Below, piece by piece: positions 7,110-48,831 of a DNA stretch of 64,000 nucleotides. The translations under genes were made by a program, and so were the position numbers. Source of the stretch: Dimorphilus gyrociliatus. Taxonomy: Eukaryota > Animalia > Annelida. Position 1 is the stretch's first letter. Every line of letters starts with the position of its first letter. The stretch is taken from NCBI GenBank assembly GCA_904063045.1, contig CAJFCJ010000007.1:988819-1052818 (forward strand), read 5' to 3'. The notes under the pieces are model-generated. The model worked only from the letters and a program-made list of their open reading frames with translations, searched no databases and was not told the origin of the DNA.

Positions 7110-8255
7110 TTAGAGCTATTTATGTTTAACTAATAGACCATGTATTTAAGGTAAACAATCTCCTTCATTCAACCATGTATAAGCAAGATTACAGTATTGT
7201 TGCAGCTGTTAACGTTTCACACCCGAAAGAAGGGAAATTTTCAACTCTTTTTTTTTCCACGAAAAAAAAGAAATAGTTTTTCAATCGAAATTTAAAACCA
7301 ATAAGCTCGCTAATAGTATGTGAACATTGTCACATGTTCGACTTACAGTTAGAATGGTAGACGTGGTCAACCGTTGTGATAACGGCTGCATATTACATTC
7401 CTTGTTTTTCTATTCTTCTCTACTCCCCTACCAGCTTTGTTTGTCTATAATCGTCTTTTTTTATCCCCCATACCCATACCCTTCCGTCTATCTTTCTAAC
7501 GTTACGGTGTGCACTTTCCCCCTCGCCCCCCGTTTCCCTAACCTCCTCACCCCCTCCCCTCTCTAACTGTCTCTCTCTCTCTCTCTCTTTCTCTATGGCC
7601 CCAACCCCCTGCCCTCACCCCCTCCTCTCTCTCTCTCTATTTACCGACTATCGTCGTGCCAGTTACGTTAGCCGAGATAGACACTCCATTTTCGAGGATC
7701 GTCTTTAACTAGCATAAACTTGATATATAAACGTAACGTTGTATAGGTAGATCTATAAAATGCTCGGTTAGAGACGGGGAAGAAGAAGAAAAAGTGGGCA
7801 ATAGAATACCGTACGTACAATAGAGAGATAAAGAGGAGAAAAAGAAAAGAAACAAAAGAATGCGATAGTGTTGCATAATGAAAAAGTAAAAGCGATAAAA
7901 ATTTGTTATAGAATTATAGAACAATGACGCGTTGTTTTACAGATAATAATTAGAAGCAGAGACAAATTATTCGTTCAACAATTAACTTCGTTCCGTCTAG
8001 AGCCTTCGGGCTGCCAGAAAACACCCGATTCCTATCTACTAACGTACTGTTTATTTAAACTTCTCTTTTCAAGCGTTAAAGGCCGATAGCCGAGAAACAG
8101 TTGGCTCTGTTATTTCTTTAAGACTAGAAAGAGGAAATAATAGAGGATGAGGGGGAGAGTATAACGGTCTTATTTAACTACTGGTCCTTTTTTTAGCAAC
8201 ATTCCTACTTAAGGACTCTATTAATGGAGCTAAGGAGTCATTTTCTTAAAATATT
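7110..8255 (+). repeat. Arm A of an inverted segmental duplication (near-identical core 7650-8073)
   Basis: Reverse complement of about 14460-15520. The core 7650-8073 matches 14600-15023 (both 424 bp) with one visible mismatch; the ORF track gives the same 71-aa translation at 7709-7924(-) and 14749-14964(+). Flanks on both sides align at roughly 70-85% by eye. Confidence 0.95.
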
Positions 8256-9168: not shown

Positions 9169-10002
9169 ATGGCAAAAAGTAAACAAGAGTTAATGACTAG
9201 GGGTCCCAGAACAAGGGGTAAAGTGTCACAATTCCACCAACAAACCCAATTACCACAAGTAACACAGCCACACCCGCAACAAAAAGCTGTGAAAGAAAAG
9301 AAAAAAAGATTATCCAAAGAGCATAGTCATCATAAGAAAAAACAATCCCTAGACTCTCATAATTCTGATAATTCTGAAAAGTCTAACAATTCCGACTCGG
9401 GAAGTAAAGAATCAGGTGAACATAAATCCGAATCCGCGTCCCATTCGGATCCTGAATCTCATTCAGAATCTATAGCGAAGAAAAAGAGTCGTAAAAAAAG
9501 GAAGAAATCTCATAAATTGCAAAAGCAGCATCGAAAAGAGAAAAGTGCGAAGAAGAAAGAAAAGAAACGTGTCACTGAAGTAGTAAATGACGACGAAAAG
9601 GCTGTAAAAAAGAAGAGGAAGAGAAGATATAAAGATGGAGGGGGTGACGATTTATTTGGGGGACATGTGGGAGATGTACAAGGAATAATGAGAGTTACTG
9701 GGGGAGCAGGTGAAGGTGTTAGCGACAATAGATCAGGAGAAGAGGCACTCTGTGTCCTAACAGAGGCAGATGTAAAAACTATTGAAGAGAAGTCGGCTTT
9801 CGTCACAGAATGCCCTGGCTGTCATTCAACGATTCGAACAAACATTCAGCACGATGTTGAAAGTGATTCATTCGCTGTCATAGCCGCTTTATCAATTTGT
9901 TGCCTATGTTTTATTCCATTCTTATTTAAGGATTGTCAAACAGTTAGTCATTATTGCCCAGAGTGTCACCAAAAGATAAGCAAATCCAAACCTTTCTGCT
10001 AA
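9169..10002 (+). CDS. LITAF/CDIP1-family zinc-binding domain protein with long Lys/His/Ser-rich N-terminus, intronless, 277 aa
   Basis: C-terminal TECPGCHSTIRT...hydrophobic stretch (FAVIAALSICCLCFIPFLF)...VSHYCPECHQKI is the LITAF CxxC-hydrophobic-HxCxxC signature. Confidence 0.88.
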   Translation: MAKSKQELMTRGPRTRGKVSQFHQQTQLPQVTQPHPQQKAVKEKKKRLSKEHSHHKKKQSLDSHNSDNSEKSNNSDSGSKESGEHKSESASHSDPESHSESIAKKKSRKKRKKSHKLQKQHRKEKSAKKKEKKRVTEVVNDDEKAVKKKRKRRYKDGGGDDLFGGHVGDVQGIMRVTGGAGEGVSDNRSGEEALCVLTEADVKTIEEKSAFVTECPGCHSTIRTNIQHDVESDSFAVIAALSICCLCFIPFLFKDCQTVSHYCPECHQKISKSKPFC

Positions 10003-13340: not shown

Positions 13341-14459
13341 TTGTGAGGGAAAGAGAGAGAGCATGGGAAAACACAAGAAAGAATAAACACTAAAATGGAC
13401 TTGTTACGTAATAATAAGATGTCTTGTTGTATTTGTTTCTCTATTAAAGAGATTTTAGAATGTCAATGGGACAAATTGCTGTGTGTTCCTTGGATTCATT
13501 ACATCCGCCTATTTTTTTCATTTTAGACGCCCAGGCACGTTTTTACTAACCGATTGACCTTTTAAACTCATTATTCCTTGTTACTTTTTTTCAGTATTTT
13601 CCATTTTTTTATAGCATATAAACGTGAGATTGAAAAGCGTAAACAGTACATTATTTTGCTGATCTTTATCTGTGGCGTAAAATGACGCTTGAAACGCCCA
13701 AAGGGACTCTGGCTCCTTGGCAGATCAATAGGAGTCTATGCTTAAAGTTTCATACTGATTAGTTAAAAGAGTATTGAAGGACCGTACCGAACAAAAATGT
13801 TTTTACGTATAAATTGTGTATATTAGATCAGAACACATCAGATTTTTCAAACGCCGCAAAAGCGATGTTCGTCTTTAAGTTCTCTTATAAAATCCACTTG
13901 AAAACGAACATCACTTTTTTTACAATTCTTTTCTTTGCAGCTTAAATAGTAACTTTATTTTCCTTTTTATTAAAAGTAGAGAAATCACGTGAGTGGTCGA
14001 ATATAAAATTGCCTTTTAATTAAAACTCGCGTGCAGTACTTTTCTATTGTTCACGTTCGGTCGAGGAAGGGAAAAAGGTGACAATGAAAAAAAAAAGAAA
14101 ATAATAATCGTCCGAGCCCCTTAACGATTTCGGATAAAAAATACGGTGGTCAGTTAGAGTACGCATTGTCGGTGGCTAGGCCTAATTGCAAACAAGAGAA
14201 TTCATTTAGTTCTACGATCGATTAACCCCACGAATGCGCCTCCTAATGAGTAGGCCTAGAACTTGTTGCGCTTGAAAGGTAAGATTCGACGCTTGATTAA
14301 TTGATTAGGTCTTTTGATGCCGCAAATATCTTTAGATTATTCAAAGAAAAATTAGCGAGTTACGAGCTTTTTCTCATCTTTCTAACGGTCTCATTCATTA
14401 AATATTTTAGTGATAGAATGTGAGAGAACGAAATCGTCTTTCACGCCTTTTCTTTCTTA

Positions 14460-15520
14460 ATCCATTGAATTATTTAAAAAACGACTCCTTGGTGACAGCA
14501 AGAACTGTTCTTAAGTAAAGATGGTGGGAAACTCGGGAGAGTTAGAGTAGTTTATTAGAAAAAAAACAGTTGCTAGTTATTGGCTATTGGCCTGTAACTC
14601 TTGGAAAGAGAAGTTTAAATAAACAGTACGTTAGTAGATAGGAATCGGGTGTTTTCTGGCAGCCCGAAGGCTCTAGACGGAACGAAGTTAATTGTTGAAC
14701 GAATAATTTGTCTCTGCTTCTAATTATTATCTGTAAAACAACGCGTCATTGTTCTATAATTCTATAACAAATTTTTATCGCTTTTACTTTTTCATTATGC
14801 AACACTATCGCATTCTTTTGTTTCTTTTCTTTTTCTCCTCTTTATCTCTCTATTGTACGTACGGTATTCTATTGCCCACTTTTTCTTCTTCTTCCCCGTC
14901 TCTAACCGAGCATTTTATAGATCTACCTATACAACGTTACGTTTATATATCAAGTTTATGCTAGTTAAAGACGATCCTCGAAAATGGAGTGTCTATCTCG
15001 GCTAACGTAACTGGCACGACGATTGTTTATATCTGCTTGTATGTAAAGAGCAAGAGAGAGAGAGAGACAGAGACAGAGAAAGAGAGAGAAAAAAAGAGAG
15101 AGAAAATGACAAAGATAGAGACAGAAAGTTTGACATGAGAGACAGGGAAAAGTGCACCTCACAAAGTTAGAAAGTCAGACAAAAAGACGCTTATAAACAA
15201 ACAAAGCTACCGGGGTGCAATAGGGAAATATAGCAGAATGAGGAATGTAATGTGTGTCGGTTGTCATGATGGTGGACCATGCCCTTCATATTAGTAGTTA
15301 AATCGAACATGTGACAATGTTCACATACTATTAACGAGCTTATCGGTTTTAAATTTCGATGGAAAGACTCTTTTTTCGTGGAAGTAGGAGGTGAAAATTT
15401 CCCTTCTTTCCAACGTGGAACGCAAACAGCTGGAACAATACTGGAATCTTGCTTATACATGGTTGACTGAAAAAGATTGTTTACCTTAAATACATGGTCT
15501 ATTAACCAAACGTAAATAAG
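14460..15520 (-). repeat. Arm B of the inverted segmental duplication (near-identical core 14600-15023)
   Basis: Reverse complement of arm A; see arm A. Confidence 0.95.
14965..15032 (-). CDS. Possible terminal coding exon (x)INNRRASYVSRDRHSIFEDRL* at the edge of the duplicated core; the same peptide end is at 7652-7708(+)
   Basis: Preceded by a pyrimidine tract of about 100 nt and a CAG| acceptor (15033). Arm A also has a long CT tract before it, but its first AG gives a different phase. No upstream exons identified. Confidence 0.25.
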
Positions 15521-17108
15521 GTATACTTTTATGATTTTATGCCACCTATAGTACGTTCTACAAATTGTAAACCGGTAGATGGCGCTTGATGTACTTATAT
15601 GGTTTTTATTCATGTATTTTATATTTGATTCATTGTAACAAATTGTTAATTGGGGGAGAGAAATATAATTGTAAAGTATTTTTTAACATGTTTACTTGGT
15701 TATAATGTATCTTTGTAGCGTTTTTAATCTAGATTAAACAGCAATTAAACGATCCGATTCAGACATTATTTTTGAATTATTTGTGCATTTTTAATTAAAT
15801 ACGTGGATAATTGACTCACAATCATTAATTGAAATGAATTATATACCTATTATATCCACCTTTGCAATATAATAAAAAACAAACTACGTAAATTAATTAA
15901 CCGAAGAATATATAGTATTTGAACACACGTTGTTTGATGGCCCCAACATATCGGAAGGTCAACTATTAATTCAAATTTATTCAAAAGTAATTACACATTT
16001 TTTATCTAGATCCGATTAAAATATTTTCGATTTATTTGAATTTTGTTTTTGTGAATGAAAAGCAGACTTTTAGAACCCATATTGACCAAAATAGAACATG
16101 GGCTTTTTTTCTGTTATTGATGTAATTACTTCTCCTATAAAATTGGTTTTACATTAAGAAAGATCTAATTTAAAGAACCTAAAAGATGGCGACACTATAA
16201 TGTTACGATATCAATATCATTACGAGAATGAGATATGATATATGGGATATGATCAGGAGGGAATTTTAATCGGAAGGTTCTCTAAGCGAAGCCACATTTG
16301 CCTGATACAACATAATCAAGTGGTATTGAGCCTAAAGCGTTCTTGGACCAATCCGACCGTGTTTACCCTACGATTCGTTCTAATTATATGAAAAACTGGC
16401 CCAAACAGTTTCATTATATATCTGTGTGTTGTATTGATGATAGACATATGGCTTCTGAAATCCATAGAGACTGCTTTTAATAATTAACACTCACTTTTGA
16501 CATAATCTTAACTTTTTACGCTGTCGCACTCAACTTTTGACGGTCACATATGCAGTCCACTAGAATATATTTAGTTTCTATCTCACGTGACTATTATATA
16601 TATGAGAGAAAAACTGAAAAAAAGGGGAGGGGAAGGGGTGAAATAAAAGTGAAAAAAAAAATAATAATAAAGAAAAGTATATCCCGAGTGGTCGTTTGAG
16701 GTGAGGGGAAAATGAAATCGGTAGAACGTTATTGCCAAATAGGGTACCGATTGTGTATAATCCGAACTCGATATTAGGACATATAAGGGAAAATTTGTAA
16801 GTGAATCTAATTGTTGCTAGCGCAATATGAAAATAGTGTATATGGTTGGAGTTTGACTAAAAATTATTGTATACTTCGCTGTATGCAATTAACTGTACTT
16901 GTTATAAAAAAGAAAAGAAGTGAAATGTAAGAGTCAATTTTATTTGGTAGCATTGAAAACCTACTAAACGCCTTCTCTAAAAGTCCTATATGAAAAAGGC
17001 GTTAAAAAAACTAACGCTCATTTTACAGTTGGAGCACGTGCGTAGGGGGCGCTCGAGAGTGGCGTCTAAGCCTTTCAAACAGGCCTACAACATGTGACCG
17101 GACCGGAC

Positions 17109-17537
17109 ATGTCTTCAACGGTTCCGAACTATGTGAACCTAGGCAAGGAGAAGAAGACGATCAAATCATCTCATATTCCGTATTATGTCAATTTACAAAC
17201 CACTGTCAAACCTCCACCCTTTTACGTGAATATTGATCAAAGGTCGGATAACAATAAAAGTAAAGATGAACAAGAGGAAGATATAGTCAACAAGGACGAC
17301 GAATACGGATATTGTAGTGATAAGGATGAGTTGAAAAAGGAAAGTCTTTCACCAATTTCTTCTTCTACGTCCAATTCAACTCCAACTTCTTCGTCATCTT
17401 CACCATCCACTTCTACAGATGCCGATTCGGATAACTGCCCCTCTGCTAAGAGAGGTAGTGTTATATACGTAGAAAAAACAGAAGTCGAGGACGGCCACTT
17501 AAAAATGGTTCGTAGAAACAGAATAAAAAATAAGTAG
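17109..17537 (+). CDS. Orphan 142-aa low-complexity protein with three Y-V-N-[LI] motifs
   Basis: Long ORF with coding-like composition. First in-frame ATG is 17109 (ORF-track start 17094 is GTG; in-frame TAA at 17067). Upstream acceptor with branch point CTAAC...TTTTACAG| at 17028 suggests a spliced 5' UTR. YVNL 17130, YVNL 17184, YVNI 17223; Ser/Thr run; KRGSV. Confidence 0.7.
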   Translation: MSSTVPNYVNLGKEKKTIKSSHIPYYVNLQTTVKPPPFYVNIDQRSDNNKSKDEQEEDIVNKDDEYGYCSDKDELKKESLSPISSSTSNSTPTSSSSSPSTSTDADSDNCPSAKRGSVIYVEKTEVEDGHLKMVRRNRIKNK

Positions 17538-18435
17538 GGGTCTTGTTATTTATTTTACTCACGTCAAGTCGAGAGACGCCAAGCAGGTTTCGCTTTTTCC
17601 AGCTTTTTTTATTATAGAATTTATATTACAAAGTCTAAAAAAAACTTTACTTATTTATTTACATTTCAATATTTTTCAGTATATTTCATTATAAGTTATT
17701 GACTTTGGCAAACAATTATAAACATATAAAACATTATACGTAATATATTCCGAGTATTTACTATAAAAGTTATGGTTATATGACAAGTAAACTCGACCTA
17801 TCATTGTAAAACCCGGAAATATGTTTATACATATTTATATATATATATACAGTAGTATAAATATATAAAAATAAAGGATAAATTATAAAGATAGGGGTTA
17901 AAATTGAATTAAAATGTAGAATTCATGAAGAAGCTTAATTATAGGGGTAAAAGAAATATATATATTTCGATTTAATTGAAGATGAATTTATTGAAGAAGA
18001 AGCAGTTTGTAGATCCGCCTTATCGATTTCGAAAAGATTTATGTATTAGACGTCTGTATACGTTTCGGTGTGGTAATGAAATGGCCGATTGACATGCGTT
18101 CCTTTATTTATTATATATTTTTACGATGTCTGCTAAGTATATTTCTTTTTCAAGTCTTAAAATAGGCCTATTTTCTGCCTAGAGTAATCAATTAGATTCA
18201 GTCGTTGTTCTCATCGGGAACGTCGCTAGAGATAGCCTGATAGACGAACTGCAATTGTTCCTTTTGACGCTACAATGCACAAGACCACATACAGTTGTAG
18301 TGCAAGGCGCATGGGAAAGGATAATGAAAATAAATATTTCTACTTTCCTTCAAAATTATCTGTTCTTTCTTAGCTAGTCTTAGATTAATTAAGGCGTCTT
18401 AATAATATGTTTATCCTTTCTTTATTTAGGTTTTG

Positions 18436-18465
<30 letters not shown>
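18436..18465. repeat. (GTT)10 microsatellite
   Basis: Ten perfect GTT units. Confidence 0.92.
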
Positions 18466-18466
<1 letters not shown>

Positions 18467-19202
18467 TTATTTTTGTTTTGTATTAAATGTTGCATTATTT
18501 TTATATACAAACAATATCTGACGAAAAGAGATTTAACAAAATAGCTAAAGAAAAACTTGAGCATAGTAATCGAATGATATCTACTCGAAAAGTCGACAGA
18601 TCAATATGTAGTAAGTGTGTGTATGTGCGTGTGTGTTCTTTCAGTATATAAATTTTTATTTAAATTGCTTATCCAAAGCTAGCCGCCACCATCTGTTTCG
18701 TTAGTAGTAGGCCTAGTTGGATTCCTGGTTAAACAGGGGTCAAAGTATCAATAATGAATGAAATAAATCGTTAATTATGTTATATAGTAGGAGAAAGAAA
18801 TGGTAGACAGTAGCCATCTTATTATATGGACACTAATCATAATTAGGGCGGAGAGGCCTTTGAGCCGGCAATAGGGGCGAAAGGGAATATAAGATGGAAA
18901 AAGAATTCTTTTAATTCAGATAGTAGAACATAAGGGGATAGAGTAAAAGTACGGCACGTGCGAAAGTCGTTATGGTCTGTGTGATTGATGGACATCGTCT
19001 CGTCTCACCTATTTGGGGAGCCAAGAAAAAAATCTGTGGCGATAAGTGTTTGATTGATAGTCGCCTAGTTTCTCTTCTAGTTTGCTAACAGGCATCTTAT
19101 GAAAGATTCTGTAATCATAACAGCTTGTTTCCTTTGTCTTATCGCATTTCTGTTTTTTACTCTTTCTACATTTCTCTTTTTCTCTTTAACTATGTTCTAC
19201 AG

Positions 19203-19334
19203 ACCACGACTGTAAAAAAAGCTCCGTATCGAGATAGAACGACGTCCCGCGAGACGTCTGGTAGAAAGGGTCGTGACAGTTTACAGCCCGTTGACATACG
19301 CCTATATTTCGGTCTAATATTCGTCACAGAGTAA
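19203..19334 (+). other. Exon-like GC-richer segment after a very strong acceptor (coding status unknown)
   Basis: About 70-nt pyrimidine tract ending TTCTACAG| at 19202; only phase 0 stays open (TTTVKKAPYRDRTTSRETSGRKGRDSLQPVDIRLYFGLIFVTE*). No partner exon found. Confidence 0.3.
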
Positions 19335-22300
19335 CCCTCATAAATCCTATAGTTTCCTATCACGTGATACCACCAACTTTATCCCTTCCCTTCGAATAGT
19401 GGATGCTATCAATTGTATCTAATCCTGTTACGACGTTGTCCAATGTAGAAATGTCTCCAAATCGTTTCAGCGAATAGAATAATGAATAAATTTTAAAAAA
19501 TTCGAAAGAATGAAATATCAAATAGCTTAATAAATTAAATTATTATTATTCTACAATTAATTCAACGATCTAGCATAATCTCTACTTTGTCTACATTTGC
19601 AACTGAAGCTAAAAAAAAGTGACTAAACTAATACATTTCATCGAAATAACTACAGGGAATTACGAGTTTACCGTATAGAAAGTTTATATTGAAAAAAAAG
19701 TCATCCTTTTTACAGGAACAATGACTCATAAGAAATAAATAAAAGAGTGATAATGAGAAGAAATCTTCCTTTTTCCTTTCTCTTTGTATTCTCTACATAC
19801 AAATATATATATATATATATACTGTATATATCTACTATACTTCTTCTAGCTTTCTCTCTCTCTCTCTCTCTCTGTCTTTCTTTCTCCCCCCCTTCCCCTT
19901 TCTTTTCCATTATCCCGTTCTATTTCATTCTCTATTAATAAAATTACTCTTCTCTTCTTTTACTTCCATAAATTCCTTTTGTCAAGTTGAATAAGTTAAC
20001 TTAATATTTCATTCGGTTAGTTAATTAAACTTTTATTTCTTACACGACCAAAGCAAAAAAACTGGTAGCTTGTAATCGAATAAGTATGGCAAAAACAAAC
20101 AGGTCGCTATTGTAAATATGAACGTCTATAAAGTGTGTAATATGTACGCCGGTAAACATAATATTATGGGCCTATATTAACAGACTATGCACGTTCCCTC
20201 GTTACATTATATTTAATACATTTTTAACGAATATCGAAAAAAATGGCGTTTTTACCATAATAAAAAAATGTTATATAAGTCTATAAAAGTTTGCTTTTAT
20301 TCTGAAACAACAGAGGAGAATGATGGTTTATCGGCTTATAAAAAATATATTAATTAGTAAACGATATCGAAGAGTAGTTGATGGTAATTGATCAATTATC
20401 GATGAATCAAGGTGCATGGAGTGAATAGATGTAATTAGATGTATACGTGTACGTTCTTTTACATACTGCACGGGTTCTAAAGCGTGAATAGTAGAAATAA
20501 TACATTAATTAATTAGAGTAATTAACAGTTTATAGGCACGTTTCTACTTGACTTTAGAATTATTTATGTTCAGACACAATGTTTAACTGAAGCATACACT
20601 GGCAGAACGATTAACGGTTTCTCGGAGGATTATAGTAATCTAGTAGTTTTTTCCTCTTACTGAACCAATAAATAGAATGTGTAAAGCGAGTATGTAGGTG
20701 TAAATCCGATTTTTTTCATACCACACCTAATAAGTATTTATGTAAGAACTATAATCCTATATAGCTTGCTGTAAATTCGTGAACTGTATATAAATTGTAT
20801 ACAATTTTTAGTCGGTTTTTAGACAAATTCCTTTCTAAATGCTCTTTTTTCAGTAGAGATTAATTAGATTCGGCTTCTGTAAAATTCATGACGGCCAATT
20901 CCGTACACGTGTGCGTACAAGTACATGTGTGCAGATGCGGACCAATGTATATTGTTTACATATGTGCCTTAGAGGAATATGAAGGATAAGATGAAGCAGA
21001 TGGATGTGTCTTAATAAAAGTAAATAAATATAAGTTGACATAAAACGAGCGAAAGAAACAATATTAGCAGTGTTATGCTTAAAAAAAACACGCAAATATC
21101 TATATTCAGTTTCTTCGTGCTAGTACTTTATCCGCAAAATGAGAATGATATGAAATGTCAGCTAATGTATGCGCGTCGCATCGATAATCAGGGCCCAAAG
21201 GGCGTCTAATAACTTCAACGTATTTTTAGCCCAACTAAACTACGTTTTTCTCATTTCATTTCTGTGTATATTTTTTTCTCCGGCTATTTTTGTCTTATAA
21301 ATTTGAAATATTTGGAATTTATCATCCAATTGAGGAGACTGACAAACAAAGTAGAAGATACAAAAAAGGAATAGTAATCATGTGATTTACTTTTTTTTTC
21401 ATTTGTGTCCATTCTGGAGTAGCTTCACATGGTACAGTGTAATTTAATAGTAGAGTAGATCGTGTAGTATTAACTTTTTAATAATATGCATCGTATGATG
21501 GAAATTTTCAATATTTATACAATTCCGTTCCGCATTGAAACATTCATAAATGGTTAAATAAGATGAAATTGCGTAACATTGCCACCAAAAACAGATGCGG
21601 CTCTTGTCACGTTCCGACCTTATAATTATATTTACATATTCATGAATTCGGCGAGTGTAACTGTTAATCAGACATGTGGGTGGCAGTGACAAGATATATA
21701 ATTGATACTTCTTTTTGCGTCAGCAACAGGCGCCTAGAGAAGAAGAAACAGTCTATTTTTTCCTATTACTGAAAAAGGCGTCTATTGAATTCGGTATAGG
21801 CGAGAACGCGAAAAATCGTAATGAAATTTGCATTCTGGTCCAGTTTTTTTTCTTTCTTAGAAAATCGACTAGATGTTGTTATTTTTTCTATAATCAGAAG
21901 AGCAAACTTAAGTTTATCGACCCAAGTTTTACTTTACAAAGCTTGCGTCCTTCGTAAAGATTTATGTGGAGGCCGTGACGTAATCTTTTTACATTACCGC
22001 TAGATGTCATGGCTCACAGTTTTTTTTACGAGAAGGGCGTCACCTAGTCGTCTGTTTTGATGGATGATCTGTTTAATTGTTTATATTCCGGCAATACCAT
22101 AATGGGAATGTCCGATTTATTAGAAATCTGATATCGTATTATTTGAGGTAAATTTAAACAGAACGGGAAAAGCAGAAGGGTAAACTACCTAAACATCTAT
22201 TATGATATAATAAATTACATTCCATAATGACTTTATCTAGGTAAAAGTAGGCCTAACCGGAATAGAGGTAGTGCGATCTTAGTATCAGGAAGTTTAAGAG

Positions 22301-25300
22301 TAAACCCTAAAGTATTTGCAATCTTGTTTTTCTTTTACTTTTGCTTTTTTCGCTTTACTTTGTTTAAGTAAGAGAATGCACTAATGTCTGGTATTGCGAA
22401 TAGCAGACATTAGAAATAAACCCTTGTAAAATTGAAATGTTACAGGAGGGGGGGGTGGGAGGGAGATTCTCTAGAAAAGATCTAGGATAGCAACTCTAAG
22501 TAGGTAATTTATAATGGAAGTTTGATTTTCTGTCCCGTATCCAAACTCTCCCTTGCTGTTTTTTGCACCCTAATCAGGGAAGTATTTTTATGCATAAACG
22601 TTAACAAACAGGACACGACGCTGATCCAATCATCCTCCACAAATCGCCGTTAATTGCGGTTTCTGTTTTACATTCGAACACAATGACGTTTATTGTCATC
22701 ATTCTCATAATAAGGCAACACGTTTTGATTATGACTATTTTAACCTATTTCACTTTTTCTGACTCTCTCTCTCTCTCTCTCTGTATATATATATATATCC
22801 TCCTCAAAACATTCATCCGAATAACGTTTATTCTTTTGTTGTTGTGTAAGAGTGGGATAGAAAAAAATTTCGTTTTGATGCATAGGCCTGTCGAACGTTG
22901 CTTTTATCCGAGCGTCACTTATCGTAAGATTTACGAGCGGAAATGATGGGGTCGTAATACGTAATAGGCTATATATATTATAGCAACGGCGTCACTCACT
23001 AGGTGGCATTCTAGCCGTATTGAACCTCGACTGCAAAAGCTTTGCACGTATAATGATGAACGAGTCTGGAGCGAGTTAGACCTTTCTCTTTTGCAGTCGG
23101 GAAACTGGCTGCGTTGTGCGAACGTTGATGGATTTTTTTACCGTGCAGTCGGATCTCCTCTAGTCTTTAGTAATGAGCGTTTTGCTGTGGAAATGGCCCA
23201 AAAATAATTTAAAAGCCAAGCAGGTTGGATATTAACTTATCTCCAAATATTTGTTTATGTTGTTTTTCTAACTTTGTCCTTTTTATGGGGTGCTGAGCTT
23301 TTGATAAAATGCAGTAGGACAATCTCGTTAGCGTCTGTTACATAAATGTCGACTCTGTGAGAGATTAGTTTCAAAAATAACTAAATAATGCAAGCGTAGG
23401 CCTCTCAATGGCAATTTTTTTTAATTCAATACCTTCTGACGTTTTAAGAGGTTTAACGTTTGCATACAGAGAACATCTTTATAAAAAATTATTCTAATAG
23501 ATTAAAATCGTTGTTAGACCATACAAACTCTTTGATTTTGTCTTCTTTTACGAGCTTTTTACCCTTTAATATCATCGTATAATTAAATATACATTCCATC
23601 ATCGATTAATACTTGAATGACGTGCGCATTACCGCTTCATTCAATCTGCAATTGTCTATATTCGAATAGTCTATTCTGAAAAAAGTTTGTTTATTGAACT
23701 ATTTATTTGTTATTCTTTCATGTACTCTCCTCGTTATTTGTGCCTCTATGTAATTGCGAGGCATTTATATTAAAGTAATACTCAATAGGGTTAATGTCTA
23801 ATTAAATCAATCAATTTACTTGAAATTTTCTTCATCTCGTCAAGTTTCCTTGAATAATAAAGACAGAAGTAATAGTGTATACAGTATAACTTATATAGGT
23901 TATATTTTTATTTATTTATATTACTATATAAAATTGATTTATTATGTAATGTCGAAAAAACTAAATAGCTTTTTTATCATCGATATGATGGAGAAGTACT
24001 TCTCTTTCCAACTTAACATGCCTAAAGATTTAATGGATATTCCTCATACAATTTACTAATAAAGCTTTAAAGTCTCTTTTATATGTATAATAAGAACAAG
24101 AGCGTTTTTATCTTTCTATCCCTGTTTTATTACCCCATCTAAAATCTCTCGAAGATGAGGAGAGAAATTTACATCTTATCTAGATATCATCTCTCTCTCT
24201 CTTTCTCTCTTTTTTTTTTCAAGATATGCTATTGCCTATATACAGAAGAATTTTCTAATCTGTACTTCAATCAACTCAATATATGCATTTATTTACTTAA
24301 TCCAGCAATTGTAGTTGACTATGAGAAATTGATTGACTTATAAATTGACCTAGTCATACTTCAACCGTATTGATAATGATAATAATAATAAAAACAACCT
24401 TTATTGTTTTTATTACTTTTATTGTTATTTGCGTGGACGTGTTTATATTGTATATATACTTTCAGGCGTTTGTGCACATGTCTAGCATTAAAAAATCATT
24501 TGTTCCGACGTGGTTCGTAAGCAAAGATCGAAATATACAAATTTACTAAAGGTTAACCGCGATGCGATTAAACGGCCTCTTTACATTTACCCTCACTTTT
24601 ATTGTACGTCCCAGAGAAACGTCTCAGCTGGTATGTTTGCTGTTTGATAATGACAAATATCGACTTAAACCGTCGATCTTGTTGGTGGAGTTGTTGTCCT
24701 AATTAAAAAACGAAAGAAACAACAAAAATTTATAGGAAAGAAAGAACGTCTTTTACTTTACTTTTTTTCTCCCGACCCCCCTCTCCTCCCCTCCCCCCAA
24801 TGATAAAAGCTTCTTAAAGATATTCTAATAAATCTTATGTATTCATATGAGTCTACTATATTAATATATACAGAAAATAAATACACATACGAAGTCTATT
24901 ATTAAGATTATCTATTCTATATAACAACTTACATATACCAGTTCGTTTTTTATGTAATTGATAGGGGTACAAGTAAATGTATAAAGGGAGTTTATGAATA
25001 AATAAATAAGGTGTAGTATATAATATGTACAATACCTATTGCAATAAAAGGGACAAGACATTGAAGAAATTGATCGATAAGTTTTGTAGGAAGTGTATCA
25101 ATCACAGCTAAACAATAGGCTGCAACACTTATCATTTATTCAAATCAAAAACTGAAAGGAGTAGCCCAAATTAGGAGAATAATGAATTTCTATGAAATTA
25201 ATTAATTATTTAATTGTAATTTTATCTTAAGAAAAAATTTTCTTTGAGAAGTAAAATGCTCTTATTGTATTAAGCAGTTAGACGGTTAATCGTCTAAATG

Positions 25301-26805
25301 ACGCATTATTTATGAAGTCTGTAAACTGATAAATGATCATTACTCTAGCAAACTATTGAAAATAAGAACTACGTAGAGGGAAATGGAAGATAACAGGGAA
25401 TAAGATGACGTAGACTCATGCTCAAATTGGTTTGGAATGATGCGTTAGCGTAGTTTTATTCACCTTTAAATCTAAGAAGTGACTTTGGTAGTTCGATATA
25501 ATAGACAGATAGAATCTATAAGCTCAAAGATATTTTAAAGGATAGTTTGCATTAAATATGCATTTTTATAACCTAATTTAAATATTAAGCTCTTGTATAA
25601 AGGATATCAGATCATTAATATTAAAAGGTGTTAAGAACAAATAAATAAATTAAGTATTGAATATCAAGCGTTAGTAATACCCTGGGCTGAAGGAGCTAAA
25701 GCCCGTGGAATTGCAGTTGAAAGGCGGGCAAACGAATAGCGCATAGCAAGAATGACGCAATCGACTGGGCAGCTTGGGACAGAAAATTGAGAAGGAGAAT
25801 ACTCGGGAGCTTTCCATAATCAGTCGGCTTTCTTCCATTTTCTATTCAGCAACGTAGGCGACTGTTTTATTAGCTTATATGATTTTAATTCCGTTTTTAT
25901 CGTAATTATTTATTATGTAACTGTCGTAGTGTTATTATTCTATTAATGTCAATCGGCTACCATACGTCAGCACGAATAGGTGAAATATTAGCAAAAGAAC
26001 GGTTAACAAAATAGATAGAATGGGAAAATGAACGGATAATTCTATCCAGCTCTACTATAAAATGTATTAGGATGATCACGTGATTTCTAAATTGTTTGTT
26101 TCTTTTTTTTTTCTGTATAAAAATTCTAGCTTCCCCAACTAGCTCATCCTTCATTAATATCCACCCATCATCGTTTCTACGGGCGGTATAATATAATATC
26201 TGTAAAATTGGTAATGGGAAACATTTTTCTATAGAAAGGAACCAAACTAAAGAAACAATTAATTTGTTCGTTTCGTTTAATATTTCCTTCGATCGTGTTT
26301 TGAGATTTGAGTTAAGCAGTCGGGGCTCTATTTATTTTGGATTATATTAAGTTTGTATTATAAACCACCAAACACCGTCTTTTATTAACAATTGGTAGTC
26401 CAACAAACTTACTCTTAATCTTTACCCTGAAATTTGACCTATCTCATTGGTCTTTTATACATTAAATCCCCTATTGAATAGAAAGTAAAAAAAAAATACA
26501 ATTAACTAATTCTATTATTGGTTTAGATTGTTTTTTATACATTAATCCTTTTATATTGGTCGCCTTAGCTGATTTCACTCTAATAGTCAATGTTGTAAGC
26601 CCCCTCTCTTTCATTCTATCTGTCTCCCTCTTAATATATAAAAGATACAGGAACAGGAAGATCATCATTGAATTATTAAAAAACCATACAATTGGTATTG
26701 ATAGTTGTATGTCATGTTAATAATAATTACTGCTATCAAAATGGTCATGTTTATTTATATAAACTATATACAATTTAGTATATCTAGCTTAATATATACA
26801 TATAC

Positions 26806-36200: not shown

Positions 36201-36610
36201 GTCAAGTCCGATGGAGATAAGGAAAAGGGCAAATGTTTCTTATTGCAGTATGAATTTATACACAATACCATAGAAATTCGTTCTTATAGGTACATATACA
36301 CTATTCCATTGAGGTGGCGCTGGTTTTAGGCCTAATCTATGTAAAAAGGAACGCCATAAGTCGTTTATCGTTCGATAGGATCTAGTATGTATCGAGTTTG
36401 GAAACCGTTGATCGGTTCCTTCGATTTAGTATTAAACGACGCTTTTAAAGCAAAGGTTATTTTATTATATTTCATTATTTAACATGTATATATTGTATAT
36501 AGGATTCTATTTGACGATCCCTCATAATAAAGTACTATAAAAACAAGAATATTGTATTGGTTTCTATTCAAAACTGGCGTATTAAATAGTTTTATTCTCT
36601 TTTACAACAG

Positions 36611-36728
36611 ATTTATACCGACTGGGCCAACCATTATTTGGAAAAATCTAGACATAGTAAGGTAATAACGGATTTACAAGTGGACGTCACGGATGGTGTT
36701 CTGTTAGCGAACGTAATCGAAGCAGTCA
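36611..36728 (+). CDS. NAV: NAV exon 2, calponin-homology domain start
   Basis: ACAG| IYTDWANHYLEKSRHSKVITDLQVDVTDGVLLANVIEAV |GTAAGT; matches NAV2/UNC-53 IYTDWANHYL...DVTDGVLLA. Confidence 0.96.
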
Positions 36729-38150
36729 GTAAGTATTTAAAAAGGGAATTAGATATGGAAAAAATGATTTGTTCATTGTCAATAAGTTCAAGTTGATAAA
36801 CAAATTAGTTTTAACTTTATCTTGTACCTTAACAATCAGTTTGTTAAGTAAAGTTTGTTCTTAAATATCACAATACCTGTCTAAATTATACGAAACGTGT
36901 ACTATAAAGAATTAAACCTAATTTTATGTACTCAATATTTTTTACTCGAGTTTATTTTTAGCAATAAACCATAGCAGTCAGTATAGCCATTACAATAAAG
37001 TAATATAATAACTTTATGTCAATTCTAATAGTAAACGTTGCTCTTAAACTTAATTTCCTTGTCAAAAGTTTTGACTTGTGAAACAATGCATACAGCGGTA
37101 TTTATTTATATTTTGACAAGGAAACCTAAAGAAAAAGCCAACTTATTGGGGAAGTATGCGATTTCTCTTGCAATTTTATACATCTATTCGGGCTATATAC
37201 TGTATATATCTACTGATAAATAATTGGATAGCTATATACTTCAAAAATATAAGCATACGCGTATTTTCGCCCGATAGAATACTTAATTAAATAAACTACA
37301 TCCAGAAGGGTTTGTTTCCATATTCATGTTAAAGAGTCTTGTTTGTCTTATAGTATTGTCTACATTCCCTCTTTATTTACCATCCTACTTTATAAAAGTG
37401 GCTATATAAAGAATTTGACACCGTTCGACCGTAAAATTTCATTGTCATAGGAGTTGAGTACCATTTAATTATCACTTAATATACAGATGAAAAAAGGCGA
37501 AATGTATATTATCAATTGTTTTCTTAATAAGTTTATTCGAATGACAAACTTTTAAACTAATTAAGTTATAAATGAAAAAAGAATGTTAGTCAATATTTTA
37601 AATTAAATAAAACAACCTTTCTATGGAGTAGAATAATGTAAAGATCCGTTTTGGATTTAGAGCGGTTTTTTTGTATAGAAAAAATGGCGTTTGTATGTTA
37701 AAAAGAGAAAAAAAAATCCGATAAAAATCTCTGGCAGCCTCATCGGTGAGATTGAAATTGTCGATTATGTCGGACGGTCTTAGTTTGGTTGAAAGAAATA
37801 TAAAGAAAAAAAAACGGTAATTAAATGCAATCCATGCAGACCATACGATTCATCGCCAAAATTGATAGTACGAGCTTTTTTTATACAATATAGTAGCCTC
37901 GTCTACTTTATAGCAATCATAAAATATAAATAACAACGTACCCTTTTATTTTTGATTTCTATAATATGCAACAGATGTCGCTATATTACCACAGTACCGG
38001 CTTCTACATGTTTAATATCCGTACCGTTATGCAACATTCAAGTTTTATAAACCTGTTTTTGTTGTCTGTTTGTTTTTATAACGATCATGAATATCAACTG
38101 TAGTATTTTGCCTCATATGATATTAATGATTTCTCTATTACACTCTACAG

Positions 38151-45274: not shown

Positions 45275-45940
45275 GCGATATTAGAGGCGGGACACCAAGA
45301 GGCGCTTATCAGGCAAAACTCAATCCAATTTGACTGAGCTTATTACATTCGTTATTCTCTTATCGGACCTTTTCGTCAAAGTTTACCGCAAGGAAATTAA
45401 ACGATTTCAGTAAATCACCTTAATTAATCAGCTGTGAACCAGGTGTAGAAGGCGTTTTCTTAGCACCTAACGAACTTATTCGCTCCTATCGATTTTAGCA
45501 CGGCGGCGTCTCTTTGTGACGCCGGCCGTCTTTTTTCCAATTGACGTGCCTCGTTCAGGAGCTGTGTGTGTCGAATATTAACGAAGTTGTTTGTCGCTTA
45601 CATTTTGCCTATTTTGTCCCTAATGGGACTAGCTGCATAAATATGAGCATTTTTTAAGCCACAACATCCACGCCAAATGTCACTTTTGACGTTTTTTCCT
45701 TGCCTTGGGTTATAGGTTATTTTAATAACGCTTTAACTATATTTAGACGCCATTTCTACCGGTGCTACTTTTGCCTCATCCATTGAATTTTCATGAAGGG
45801 CGTCAACAACATGTATCTTGCTCTGAATTATTTCATAGTATACAATGCGAGTAGGCTACAGATGGCGCTCAGGCTATCGATTATCTAATTTAAATCCTAT
45901 GCTGATCAAGTGTTTAATTACTACTCTTTTAATTTAACAG

Positions 45941-47177: not shown

Positions 47178-48831
47178 GATCGAACAATTTAACAGCTAAG
47201 AATAATAATCGACCGGAATCTTTCTCTTCTCGTTCCGAGTCACCGTCCTCTTCTACTGGAATACCCACACCGTCCTCAAGATTACCACAAAGAAGAACGA
47301 TAAATTCCTCGACATCGTCTATTGCTTCATCTTCTTGCTCATCCTCGAAACCAAATAACAACAGCATGCTGGATAAATTCAAATTTTTTCAATCGAAGGA
47401 TAAGAAGAAGGGTCAATCAACTATACCTGAAGACGGAACGGCGGCAGCGAGATTAGCAACGGGCACTTCTTCGCCGAAATTGTCAATTAAGGCTTTTGCA
47501 AAGAAAACTCTGGGAAAGAAAAATTCTGAAGAGTATCCATCTATTCCACCTCCCCAAACGCAAATAGTCAGTCCGGTTGAAATGCAACCACAACAACTAC
47601 AATTTGCTGTTGCATCTTCCAAAAAATCCTCCAAATCCGATGCTAAGCAACAACAATCCATTCCTGCCAAATATCAACAAATCACAAGTCGTCCAAATGG
47701 TGCTGCTGCAAGGAATAGCACAAATAGAACGTCGATAGCATCAAATAGCAGTACAGGATCTAGTAGTTATCTCTCAAATAGAGGTATACCAAAGCCGACA
47801 TCAGCCTCTAAAATTAAATCTGATTCCTCGAAAATAATGCAATCTAAGCACCGAAAGTCATCGGACAAGAATGCTAACAAAGTTTCTCACAAGGCGCATA
47901 GCACCACAACAAACCCCACATCTCCTCTACAACCGGTACCTGAAACCGACCCCTCTGTTAGGCTACAGCCTCTAGGCAGTGCTCAAGAAACTGAAGTATC
48001 AGATTCAAAAAAGAAGAGTTCTACCAAACAAAAGAAATTACAGGATGCCTTGAAACAGCAACAAGCTACTAGAGCCGCTTTAGCTCAGCACAAGGCAGAA
48101 AGTCGAGCAAAGAAAATAATAGAAAAATCCGATAGCGAAAATGTGCCCAGCAGTGTCGCTAGTAGTTCCAGTTCTTTATGTTCAGTAACTGGAAGTCAGG
48201 GTGGAAAGAGCAGTTCTTCTTCAAAATCAAATAATAGTGGCGACAGCGTCATATTCAGACCTTCTTCATGTGATGAATTAGATTCAAATGATAGCAGTGT
48301 GCCACCTTCGCCAGCCATGCATGCCCGATCTGATCATATTTCTAATTTAAGAAAACATAAACCTCCTCCAACGCCAACTAGATCTGTGTCTATTGCCAAT
48401 CAAAATCAGAAGATTGAGACGACGTTTTCAGATGAAATTGCCTCTTCACCAGTACAAGTTCAAGCTATGGAACCTTTACCGAGAGTTTCACCATACGCTT
48501 ATTTAAGAGTAGGTCTAAATGCAACTGTTCAAACATCGGTTCCGCCCCTCGGCTTGGGAACAACTAAAGATAGTGCTGCTCATCGCTTGATTGATCCGAC
48601 AAAATTCTACTTGAACAAAAAGGCGTCGAACGAAGTTGATTTAGCCGCCGGTTACATGTCAGACGGTGACGTTCTTTGTTCTTCGAACAATAGTTCAGTG
48701 GATCCCGCTGGGTACTTGAGTGAGGGAGGAACCAGCGTATACGCGAGAAGGATGCAGCAAAGATTTAGAGAAGGGATGCAAGCAGTTAAGGAATGTATGC
48801 AAAAGTCATCCGCTTTGATGGACCATGATAG
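47178..48831 (+). CDS. NAV: NAV exon 7 (large Ser-rich exon)
   Basis: AAACAG| phase 1, in frame with ORF 47366. Contains SRLP/STIP (SxIP-type) motifs and conserved AGYMSDGDVL / GYLSEGG blocks; ends MDHD AG|GTTTGT, phase 2. Confidence 0.92.

Follow-up and report, generated by a model that had tools for sequence, protein, structure and literature searches.

A small lineage-restricted protein with three YVN motifs in Dimorphilus gyrociliatus, a candidate docking scaffold for Drk/Grb2

A window of 64,000 nucleotides from the annelid Dimorphilus gyrociliatus (contig CAJFCJ010000007.1 of assembly GCA_904063045.1, positions 988,819 to 1,052,818 of the forward strand) holds a short open reading frame (ORF) that begins with an ATG at 17109 and ends with a TAG at 17535-17537. 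All coordinates given here are those of the window, and features lie on the plus strand. The encoded protein of 142 amino acids (17109..17537, stop included), called P0001 hereafter, carries the tripeptide Tyr-Val-Asn (YVN) three times near its N-terminus, and from the letters alone it had been proposed to be a novel adaptor that docks the SH2 domain of Grb2 or Drk. Is this frame a gene, and do its motifs serve as phosphotyrosine docking sites? Our comparison with a related species indicates that 17109-17537 is almost certainly a real protein-coding gene, best explained as the only coding exon of a gene that is restricted to one lineage. The docking reading is plausible and the best available, but unproven.

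Homologues of P0001 were sought with a word search of 5.8 × 10^9 proteins, using the whole sequence as well as residues 1-47, and with an exhaustive HMMER search of 1.84 × 10^9 cluster representatives. Across both libraries only one homologue was found, P0002, a protein of 138 amino acids with 83% identity, and the orphan status claimed in the original prediction therefore stands. No further relatives were detected in an ESM Atlas feature search or among PDB sequences at E<=10. A metagenome scan with back-translated P0001 patterns and with a 42-nt probe from the invariant leader gave no match, and a search of the animal's own genome revealed no paralogue. The protein libraries, PDB and Pfam likewise yielded no detectable homology to the Shc, LAT, Gab-Dos, Dok or FRS2 families. 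P0002 is encoded on Logan contigs from three runs and belongs to another species. The longest of these contigs (L001, 11.2 kb) is genomic DNA and is collinear with window positions 15464-26317 at about 76% identity.

This alignment allowed us to compare the two frames with their surroundings. Substitutions between the ORFs fall on codon positions 1, 2 and 3 in the ratio 11/12/42, which places 65% of them at the third position. The nonsynonymous rate (dN) is 0.08 and the synonymous rate (dS) 0.70, giving a dN/dS of 0.12. When the whole alignment was covered with sliding windows of 414 nt, the periodicity chi-square reached 30 at the ORF compared to a median of 1.3. Not a single indel was found in 402 nt of the ORF, compared to a mean of 6.4 in the flanks, where only 1% of the windows are free of indels. 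When 15750-26000 was scanned with windows of 90-180 nt, no other periodic and indel-free stretch appeared, although such a scan is blind to short or nearly invariant exons. Within 1.3 kb on its upstream side and 8.5 kb on its downstream side, the ORF is thus the sole coding exon that could be detected. Gene callers also returned stand-alone products in both species (142 and 138 aa). The codon-position bias, the low dN/dS, the lack of indels and the unique periodicity together argue for purifying selection on a real coding sequence.

Identity to P0002 amounts to 44/47 in residues 1-47, 52/69 in the linker formed by residues 48-116, and 18/19 in residues 117-135. The first of these segments contains the three motifs named in the original prediction, all of which are present: NYVNL (residues 7-11, 17127-17141), YYVNL (25-29, 17181-17195) and FYVNI (38-42, 17220-17234). 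Their tyrosines, Y8, Y26 and Y39, are 18 and 13 residues apart. What had not been remarked before is a proline at position -2 of every motif tyrosine (VPNY, IPYY, PPFY), so that the repeat unit reads P-x-Y-V-N-[L/I]. In this extended form, motif 1 is P6-N-Y8-V-N-L11 (17124..17141), motif 2 is P24-Y-Y26-V-N-L29 (17178..17195) and motif 3 is P37-F-Y39-V-N-I42 (17217..17234); the last also reads as PPxY (PPFY). The proline at -2, the valine at +1, the asparagine at +2 and a hydrophobic residue at +3 are kept in all three motifs of both species. Motif 2 is the same in P0002 despite a synonymous change of a leucine codon, motif 3 is also the same, and within the motifs only Leu11, the +3 residue of motif 1, is substituted, by Phe, which gives PNYVNF.

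Such a triplet is hardly expected by chance. From the composition of P0001, 0.038 YVN would be expected (Poisson P(>=3) = 9e-6), and three copies were reached in only 2 of 200,000 composition-preserving shuffles. The codons of the tripeptide differ between the copies (TAT GTG AAC, TAT GTC AAT and TAC GTG AAT), and since each copy has its own codons, the triplet is not a recent DNA repeat. From codon 11 onward, synonymous changes are frequent in the N-terminal module, both within and between the motifs. Because of these many synonymous changes and the different codons of each copy, the constraint appears to act on the peptide rather than on the DNA.

The rest of the protein matches its earlier description as an acidic, Ser/Thr-rich body with a KRGSV sequence (residues 114-118) and a basic C-terminus. 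The variable linker (residues 48-116, 17250..17456) has a net charge of -7, consists to 33% of Ser and Thr, and is predicted with a local distance difference test score (pLDDT) of <50. Over the entire protein, 24 Ser, 16 Lys, 22 Asp plus Glu and 9 Pro were counted among the 142 residues. K114-R-G-S117-V (17448..17462) is a candidate PKA-type site for a basophilic kinase and reads KRDSV in P0002; a kinase might use it. Next comes the conserved C-terminal module SVIYVEKTEVEDGHLKMVR (residues 117-135, 17457..17513), predicted to form a beta-hairpin and followed by a basic tail; residues 117-142 together read SVIYVEKTEVEDGHLKMVRRNRIKNK. A 4-nt indel near the end of the ORF alters the last residues, and the tail is basic in both species.

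The protein had been described as disordered and free of domains, and three approaches agree on this. AlphaFold2, run on the two-sequence alignment, returned a mean pLDDT of 56, with a hairpin at 121-135 as the only secondary structure (strands 121-127 and 130-135, pLDDT about 75-82). The ESM Atlas model was similarly disordered (pLDDT 0.48). Pfam contained no domain above noise for P0001; the best resemblance was a weak, sub-threshold one to SR-25 (E 0.078). This predicted disorder resembles that of docking proteins, and we count it in favor of the docking reading.

What could such a protein do? The asparagine at +2 is the specificity determinant for the SH2 domain of Grb2, and also for that of Drosophila Drk (PMC11203457). 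The Grb2 SH2 domain binds pYVNV with consistently high affinity and prefers Leu or Ile over Val at +3, and the crystallised BCR ligand is KPFpYVNV (174-180) (PMC9279350). In P0001, four consecutive positions (Y, V at +1, N at +2 and L/I at +3) match this high-affinity ligand, and they do so three times. We therefore tentatively read P0001 as a phosphotyrosine-dependent, trivalent docking scaffold or decoy for Drk/Grb2, a proposal to which we give clearly less than even weight.

According to this model, a tyrosine kinase would phosphorylate Y8, Y26 and Y39, and each resulting pY-V-N-Phi (Phi, hydrophobic) would be bound by the SH2 domain of Drk/Grb2, whose specificity demands the Asn at +2. With SH2 binding at each of the three sites, one molecule of P0001 could recruit up to three Drk-Sos/Dos units. 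It would then act as a soluble multivalent scaffold or decoy in receptor tyrosine kinase (RTK)/Ras signaling, and the C-terminal hairpin and basic tail might supply the targeting contact that is otherwise missing. A conserved start-stop upstream ORF (uORF) located 11 nt before the ATG probably damps expression. Transcription, phosphorylation, Drk binding and the route to the kinase are all steps that we infer.

The partner assumed by the original prediction is present, as the same genome encodes a Grb2-type SH2 domain on C19, split over two exons (1254-1391 and 1460-1627) of the Grb2/Drk-type gene L037 (G000:C19:2563500-2566500). This domain carries FLVRNSES, QHFKV and KYFLWVVKF, including the tryptophan of the EF loop. 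In Grb2-type SH2 domains, it is this tryptophan that imposes the rule of Asn at +2. The two exons come after an exon ending in ...EMKPHP, and an unusual insertion, QGRANFPAQENG, was seen in the loop before the FLVR strand. The genome contains about 50 SH2 exons in total. A Shc-like single ORF with PTB and SH2 domains was also found on the minus strand (L011, G000:C19:3021992-3025207). Its interdomain linker contains no YxN and a single tyrosine (CYVAE), and for this reason the Shc of this genome may be without the classical Grb2 site.

Several points weigh against docking on Drk/Grb2. A PH domain, a PTB domain, a transmembrane segment and a lipidation module were looked for in P0001 by Pfam search and hydrophobicity, as it is such modules that take known docking proteins to kinases, and none was found; the N-terminus is MSS. 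The motif tyrosines are in a basic or neutral context, and many kinases target acidic sites. The same letters also fit a YxxPhi sorting signal, a PPxY ligand or a pair resembling an immunoreceptor tyrosine-based activation motif (ITAM). Finally, conservation of the YVN motifs, which had been put forward as a check, is not selective. All three motifs and their -2 prolines are kept, but the whole 47-residue N-terminus is 94% identical, and as the comparison covers a single relative with 83% identity, motif conservation is inseparable from that of the N-terminal block (44/47). A complex prediction with the animal's own SH2 domain, entered as two separate exon chains without phosphate, and residues 1-47 of P0001 gave a score of 0.17 (mark 0.34), a value that counts neither for docking nor against it.

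P0001 could also be a real small acidic disordered protein that takes no part in tyrosine signaling, for example a nuclear or chaperone-like substrate of CK2 or PKA. In that case the basic tail would be a nuclear localization signal, and the repeated PxYVN[L/I] would provide hydrophobic contacts for docking to some folded partner. The composition (Ser, Lys and Asp+Glu), the basic tail and the faint SR-25 match all speak for this possibility, which we regard as a serious if doubtful one. It leaves unexplained, however, why four residues in a row should match a high-affinity Grb2 ligand, and this in all three copies.

A second alternative is that the motifs act unphosphorylated, either as PY-type ligands of WW domains (Nedd4/Su(dx)/Yorkie class), as Y-x-x-Phi signals for the mu subunit of AP-2, or as both. 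P0001 would then be a small adaptor for a ubiquitin ligase or for trafficking, and upon tyrosine phosphorylation it might exchange WW partners for SH2 ones. The -2 proline would find a ready explanation here, as it is invariant in three copies and both species, an outcome with a chance of about 0.063^3 given that 9 of the 142 residues are Pro. Copy three, PPFY, is a canonical PPxY, and all three fit Y-x-x-[L/I]. The proline does not discriminate, however, since the classical Grb2 site of BCR has it as well. Moreover, only one copy of three is a canonical PPxY, VPNY and IPYY being non-canonical, and the invariant Val at +1 and Asn at +2 are not needed for binding to WW domains or to AP-2. YxxPhi signals also work in the tails of membrane proteins, and P0001 has no transmembrane segment. 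Overall, we consider this alternative unlikely.

It is similarly unlikely that the phosphotyrosines recruit SH2 proteins other than Drk. The Y26 and Y39 motifs (Y26VNL-x9-Y39VNI) could form an ITAM-like pair for a tandem-SH2 kinase of the Shark/Syk type, and single sites could serve the SH2 domains of Csw/SHP2, Shc, PLC-gamma or Src-family kinases, which accept pY-V-x-[L/I]. Indeed, the 9 residues that separate the two motifs fit the spacing YxxL/I-x(6-12)-YxxL/I, and a two-SH2 kinase is among the SH2 proteins encoded in the genome (L016/L026). These other SH2 classes, however, do not require the Asn at +2 that is invariant here. The acidic residues expected upstream in an ITAM are absent, motif 1 is 18 residues from motif 2 and thus out of range, and no transmembrane segment was found in P0001 that would provide the receptor context of an ITAM.

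The original prediction had itself named an outcome that would overturn it, namely that the ORF encodes only the end of a larger protein, such as the cytoplasmic tail of a receptor, as its last coding exon joined through the phase-1 AG at 17082. A variant of this idea is that the ORF is the upstream cistron of a long NAV transcript. These readings are favored by a frame that is open from 17070, an AG that does end at 17082 and a conserved leader; the strand of the ORF is also that of NAV, which has a calponin-homology (CH) exon at 36605-36733. On the other side, the periodicity scan of 15750-26000 gave no support for a receptor exon, as it revealed no other coding-like stretch in that interval. 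The ATG at 17109 and an in-frame stop at 17067-17069 are both conserved, the gene callers' products stand alone, and donor-like GTs within the ORF are not conserved in the relative. The LITAF-like ORF upstream has its own stop at 10002. Taken together, membership of a larger protein is improbable. We also rejected an exon of NAV or of the LITAF-like gene as a candidate, as the frame is not continuous with either: the LITAF-like frame stops at 10002, and the ORF has its own conserved stop. Lastly, a chance open frame over conserved non-coding elements is very improbable, because even though the neighborhood is dense with non-coding blocks of at least 93% identity and the first 22 codons lie within one, the third-position excess, the absence of indels and the frame open in both species form a coding signature that is unique within the aligned 10 kb.

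The DNA directly in front of the ORF is unusually constrained. The leader, 80 nt between an AG acceptor (17027-17028) and the ATG (17029..17108), is nearly invariant: 3 differences were counted in about 85 nt, compared to about 76% identity in the surroundings and a divergence of 45% at the synonymous sites of the ORF. Conservation falls sharply upstream of 17014. This edge coincides with the acceptor TTTTACAG, after which the exon would start at 17029, and with an initiator (Inr)-like TCATTT. Both AG dinucleotides of the original prediction, ending at 17028 and 17082, are in the sequence, as is its start-stop uORF ATGTGA (17092..17097), which is identical in the relative and located 11 nt upstream of the main ATG. 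This uORF may have a regulatory role. The leader further contains a palindromic E-box, CACGTG (17035..17040), conserved in the relative, and a CTCF-like core, TAGGGGGCGC (17043..17052), with the orthologous site CAGGGGGCGC at L001 1595-1604. The pattern YAGRKGGCGC, which we take to be a CTCF consensus, matches the window 3 times compared to 0.15 expected (15576-15585, 17043-17052 and 45859-45868, all on the plus strand); the CTCF-like core is a lead only. As a structured RNA the leader was rejected (fold z = -0.29, no Rfam match at E<=1).

How the transcript begins could be envisaged in two ways. Instead of a spliced 5' end at 17029, transcription might start at the Inr-like TCATTT (17018..17023, A at 17020), which is conserved in the relative and has a likewise conserved TATA-like TATATGAA (16987-16994) 33 nt upstream. 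One contig of the relative, L003, is unspliced over 1.58 kb and starts 2 nt after the Inr-like A (equivalent to window 17022); if that run were RNA, its start would mark the transcription start. For a spliced leader, the original prediction had offered an exon 1 at 14152..14278, with an Inr-like TCAGTT (14150-14155) and a donor, GAAAG/GTAAGA, whose GT is indeed found at 14279-14280. Closer to the ORF is a block at 16676..16850, about 92% identical to the relative, with donor-like GAG/GTGAGG (GT 16701) and TTT/GTAAGT (GT 16797). If the leader is spliced, these two donors are nearer than the one at 14279. No codon periodicity was detected in this block and it is thus not coding; it may be a non-coding exon 1 of the gene or an enhancer.

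At the 3' end, the last codons contain an AATAAA (17522..17527) that is conserved in the relative, and a GT/T-rich stretch comes immediately past the stop. This candidate poly(A) signal may leave a very short 3' untranslated region, with the mRNA ending just past the stop. A conserved block follows (17538..17589), which includes TCACGTCA, resembling a cAMP response element, and AGACGCCA (17574-17581). The latter is complementary to TGGCGTCT in the leader (17060-17067), a match of 8 nt that could be chance.

Upstream, the LITAF-like gene (9169-10002) lies between the two arms (7117-8091 and 15518-14582) of an inverted duplication, which are 82% identical over 992 nt. In the relative, contigs L001 and L002 (1-57) each start precisely where arm B has its outer edge, and over the first 56 nt they match either arm. 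As their ends match both arms, the duplication seems to be present in the sister species too and to break its assembly there. A word search with the LITAF-like protein at E<=1e-10, made to find the relative's contig on that side, returned only the window's own protein. The CTCF-like match at 15576-15585 is about 60 nt beyond the outer edge of arm B. The genome is AT-rich, with a CpG observed/expected ratio of 1.12. Downstream on the same strand lies NAV, the large exons of which start at 47366. The calponin-homology match at 36605-36733 (+, E 6e-4), 19 kb downstream of the ORF, is presumably its N-terminal CH exon. Between 17900 and 26000 the alignment is dense with conserved blocks, at least 93% identical over at least 80 nt, none of which has codon periodicity (for example 18140-18295, 19212-19436, 20052-20191, 21102-21299 and 22858-23140). 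They are probably a regulatory landscape of NAV or of neighboring developmental genes.

The docking reading can be extended to a broader proposal, which we consider rather unlikely in full. P0001 might be a taxonomically restricted, possibly recent, minimal soluble scaffold that combines three optimal Drk/Grb2 ligands with a targeting hairpin and tunes RTK/Ras signaling in one lineage. Once phosphorylated, it would cross-link or sequester Drk-Sos, with its expression gated by the uORF and the leader with its CTCF-like site and E-box. It would amount to a multivalent device like LAT, but with no membrane anchor and unrelated in sequence to known adaptors. If the docking role is true, the deeply conserved RTK-Grb2/Drk-Sos-Ras pathway would have gained a lineage-specific regulator made of short linear motifs alone. 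It would be a clean natural example of an adaptor function arising without domains or homology, and a minimal multivalent Grb2 ligand useful for studies of clustering and condensates. If docking is false, what remains is an orphan coding gene that is well supported and whose leader is unusually constrained. The locus would then serve as a compact case for control by a start-stop uORF and for a boundary-type DNA motif that overlaps a 5' untranslated region.

Compared to known Grb2 ligands, P0001 has the core Y-V-N and the hydrophobic +3 in common with Tyr177 of BCR (KPFpYVNV) and with the pYVNV of Shc (PMC9279350, PMC11203457). BCR also shares the proline at -2 and the phenylalanine at -1 with motif 3, KPPPFYVNI (PMC9279350). 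In BCR and Shc, however, these are single sites in large multidomain proteins (kinase/GEF and PTB plus SH2, respectively), whereas P0001 has three sites in a domain-free protein of 142 aa that shows no sequence homology to either. LAT-type adaptors are disordered proteins in which three distal YxN sites, tens of residues apart, cluster Grb2-Sos. P0001 is likewise disordered by prediction and has three YxN sites with spacings of that order, so multivalent recruitment of Grb2 is possible. The sequence pYVNV occurs in LAT as well (PMC9279350). Yet LAT, found in vertebrate lymphocytes, is palmitoylated and spans the membrane, while P0001 lacks a transmembrane or lipidation signal and is not homologous to it.

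Among the insect partners of Drk, Sevenless, with its pY2546 (pYANE), is a receptor kinase, unlike P0001, and Dos/Gab has a PH domain and binds Drk via SH3 sites, neither of which is found in P0001. Another comparison is offered by the PY adaptors for ligases of the Nedd4 family (Ndfip, Commissureless) and by the PPxY phospho-switch of beta-dystroglycan, in which a PPxY tyrosine could toggle between WW and SH2 partners. Like P0001, PY adaptors carry [L/P]PxY-like repeats in a short disordered chain, but they are membrane-anchored, and P0001 has only one canonical PPxY. Should the docking reading hold, P0001 would belong to a known kind, the pYxN docking scaffold.

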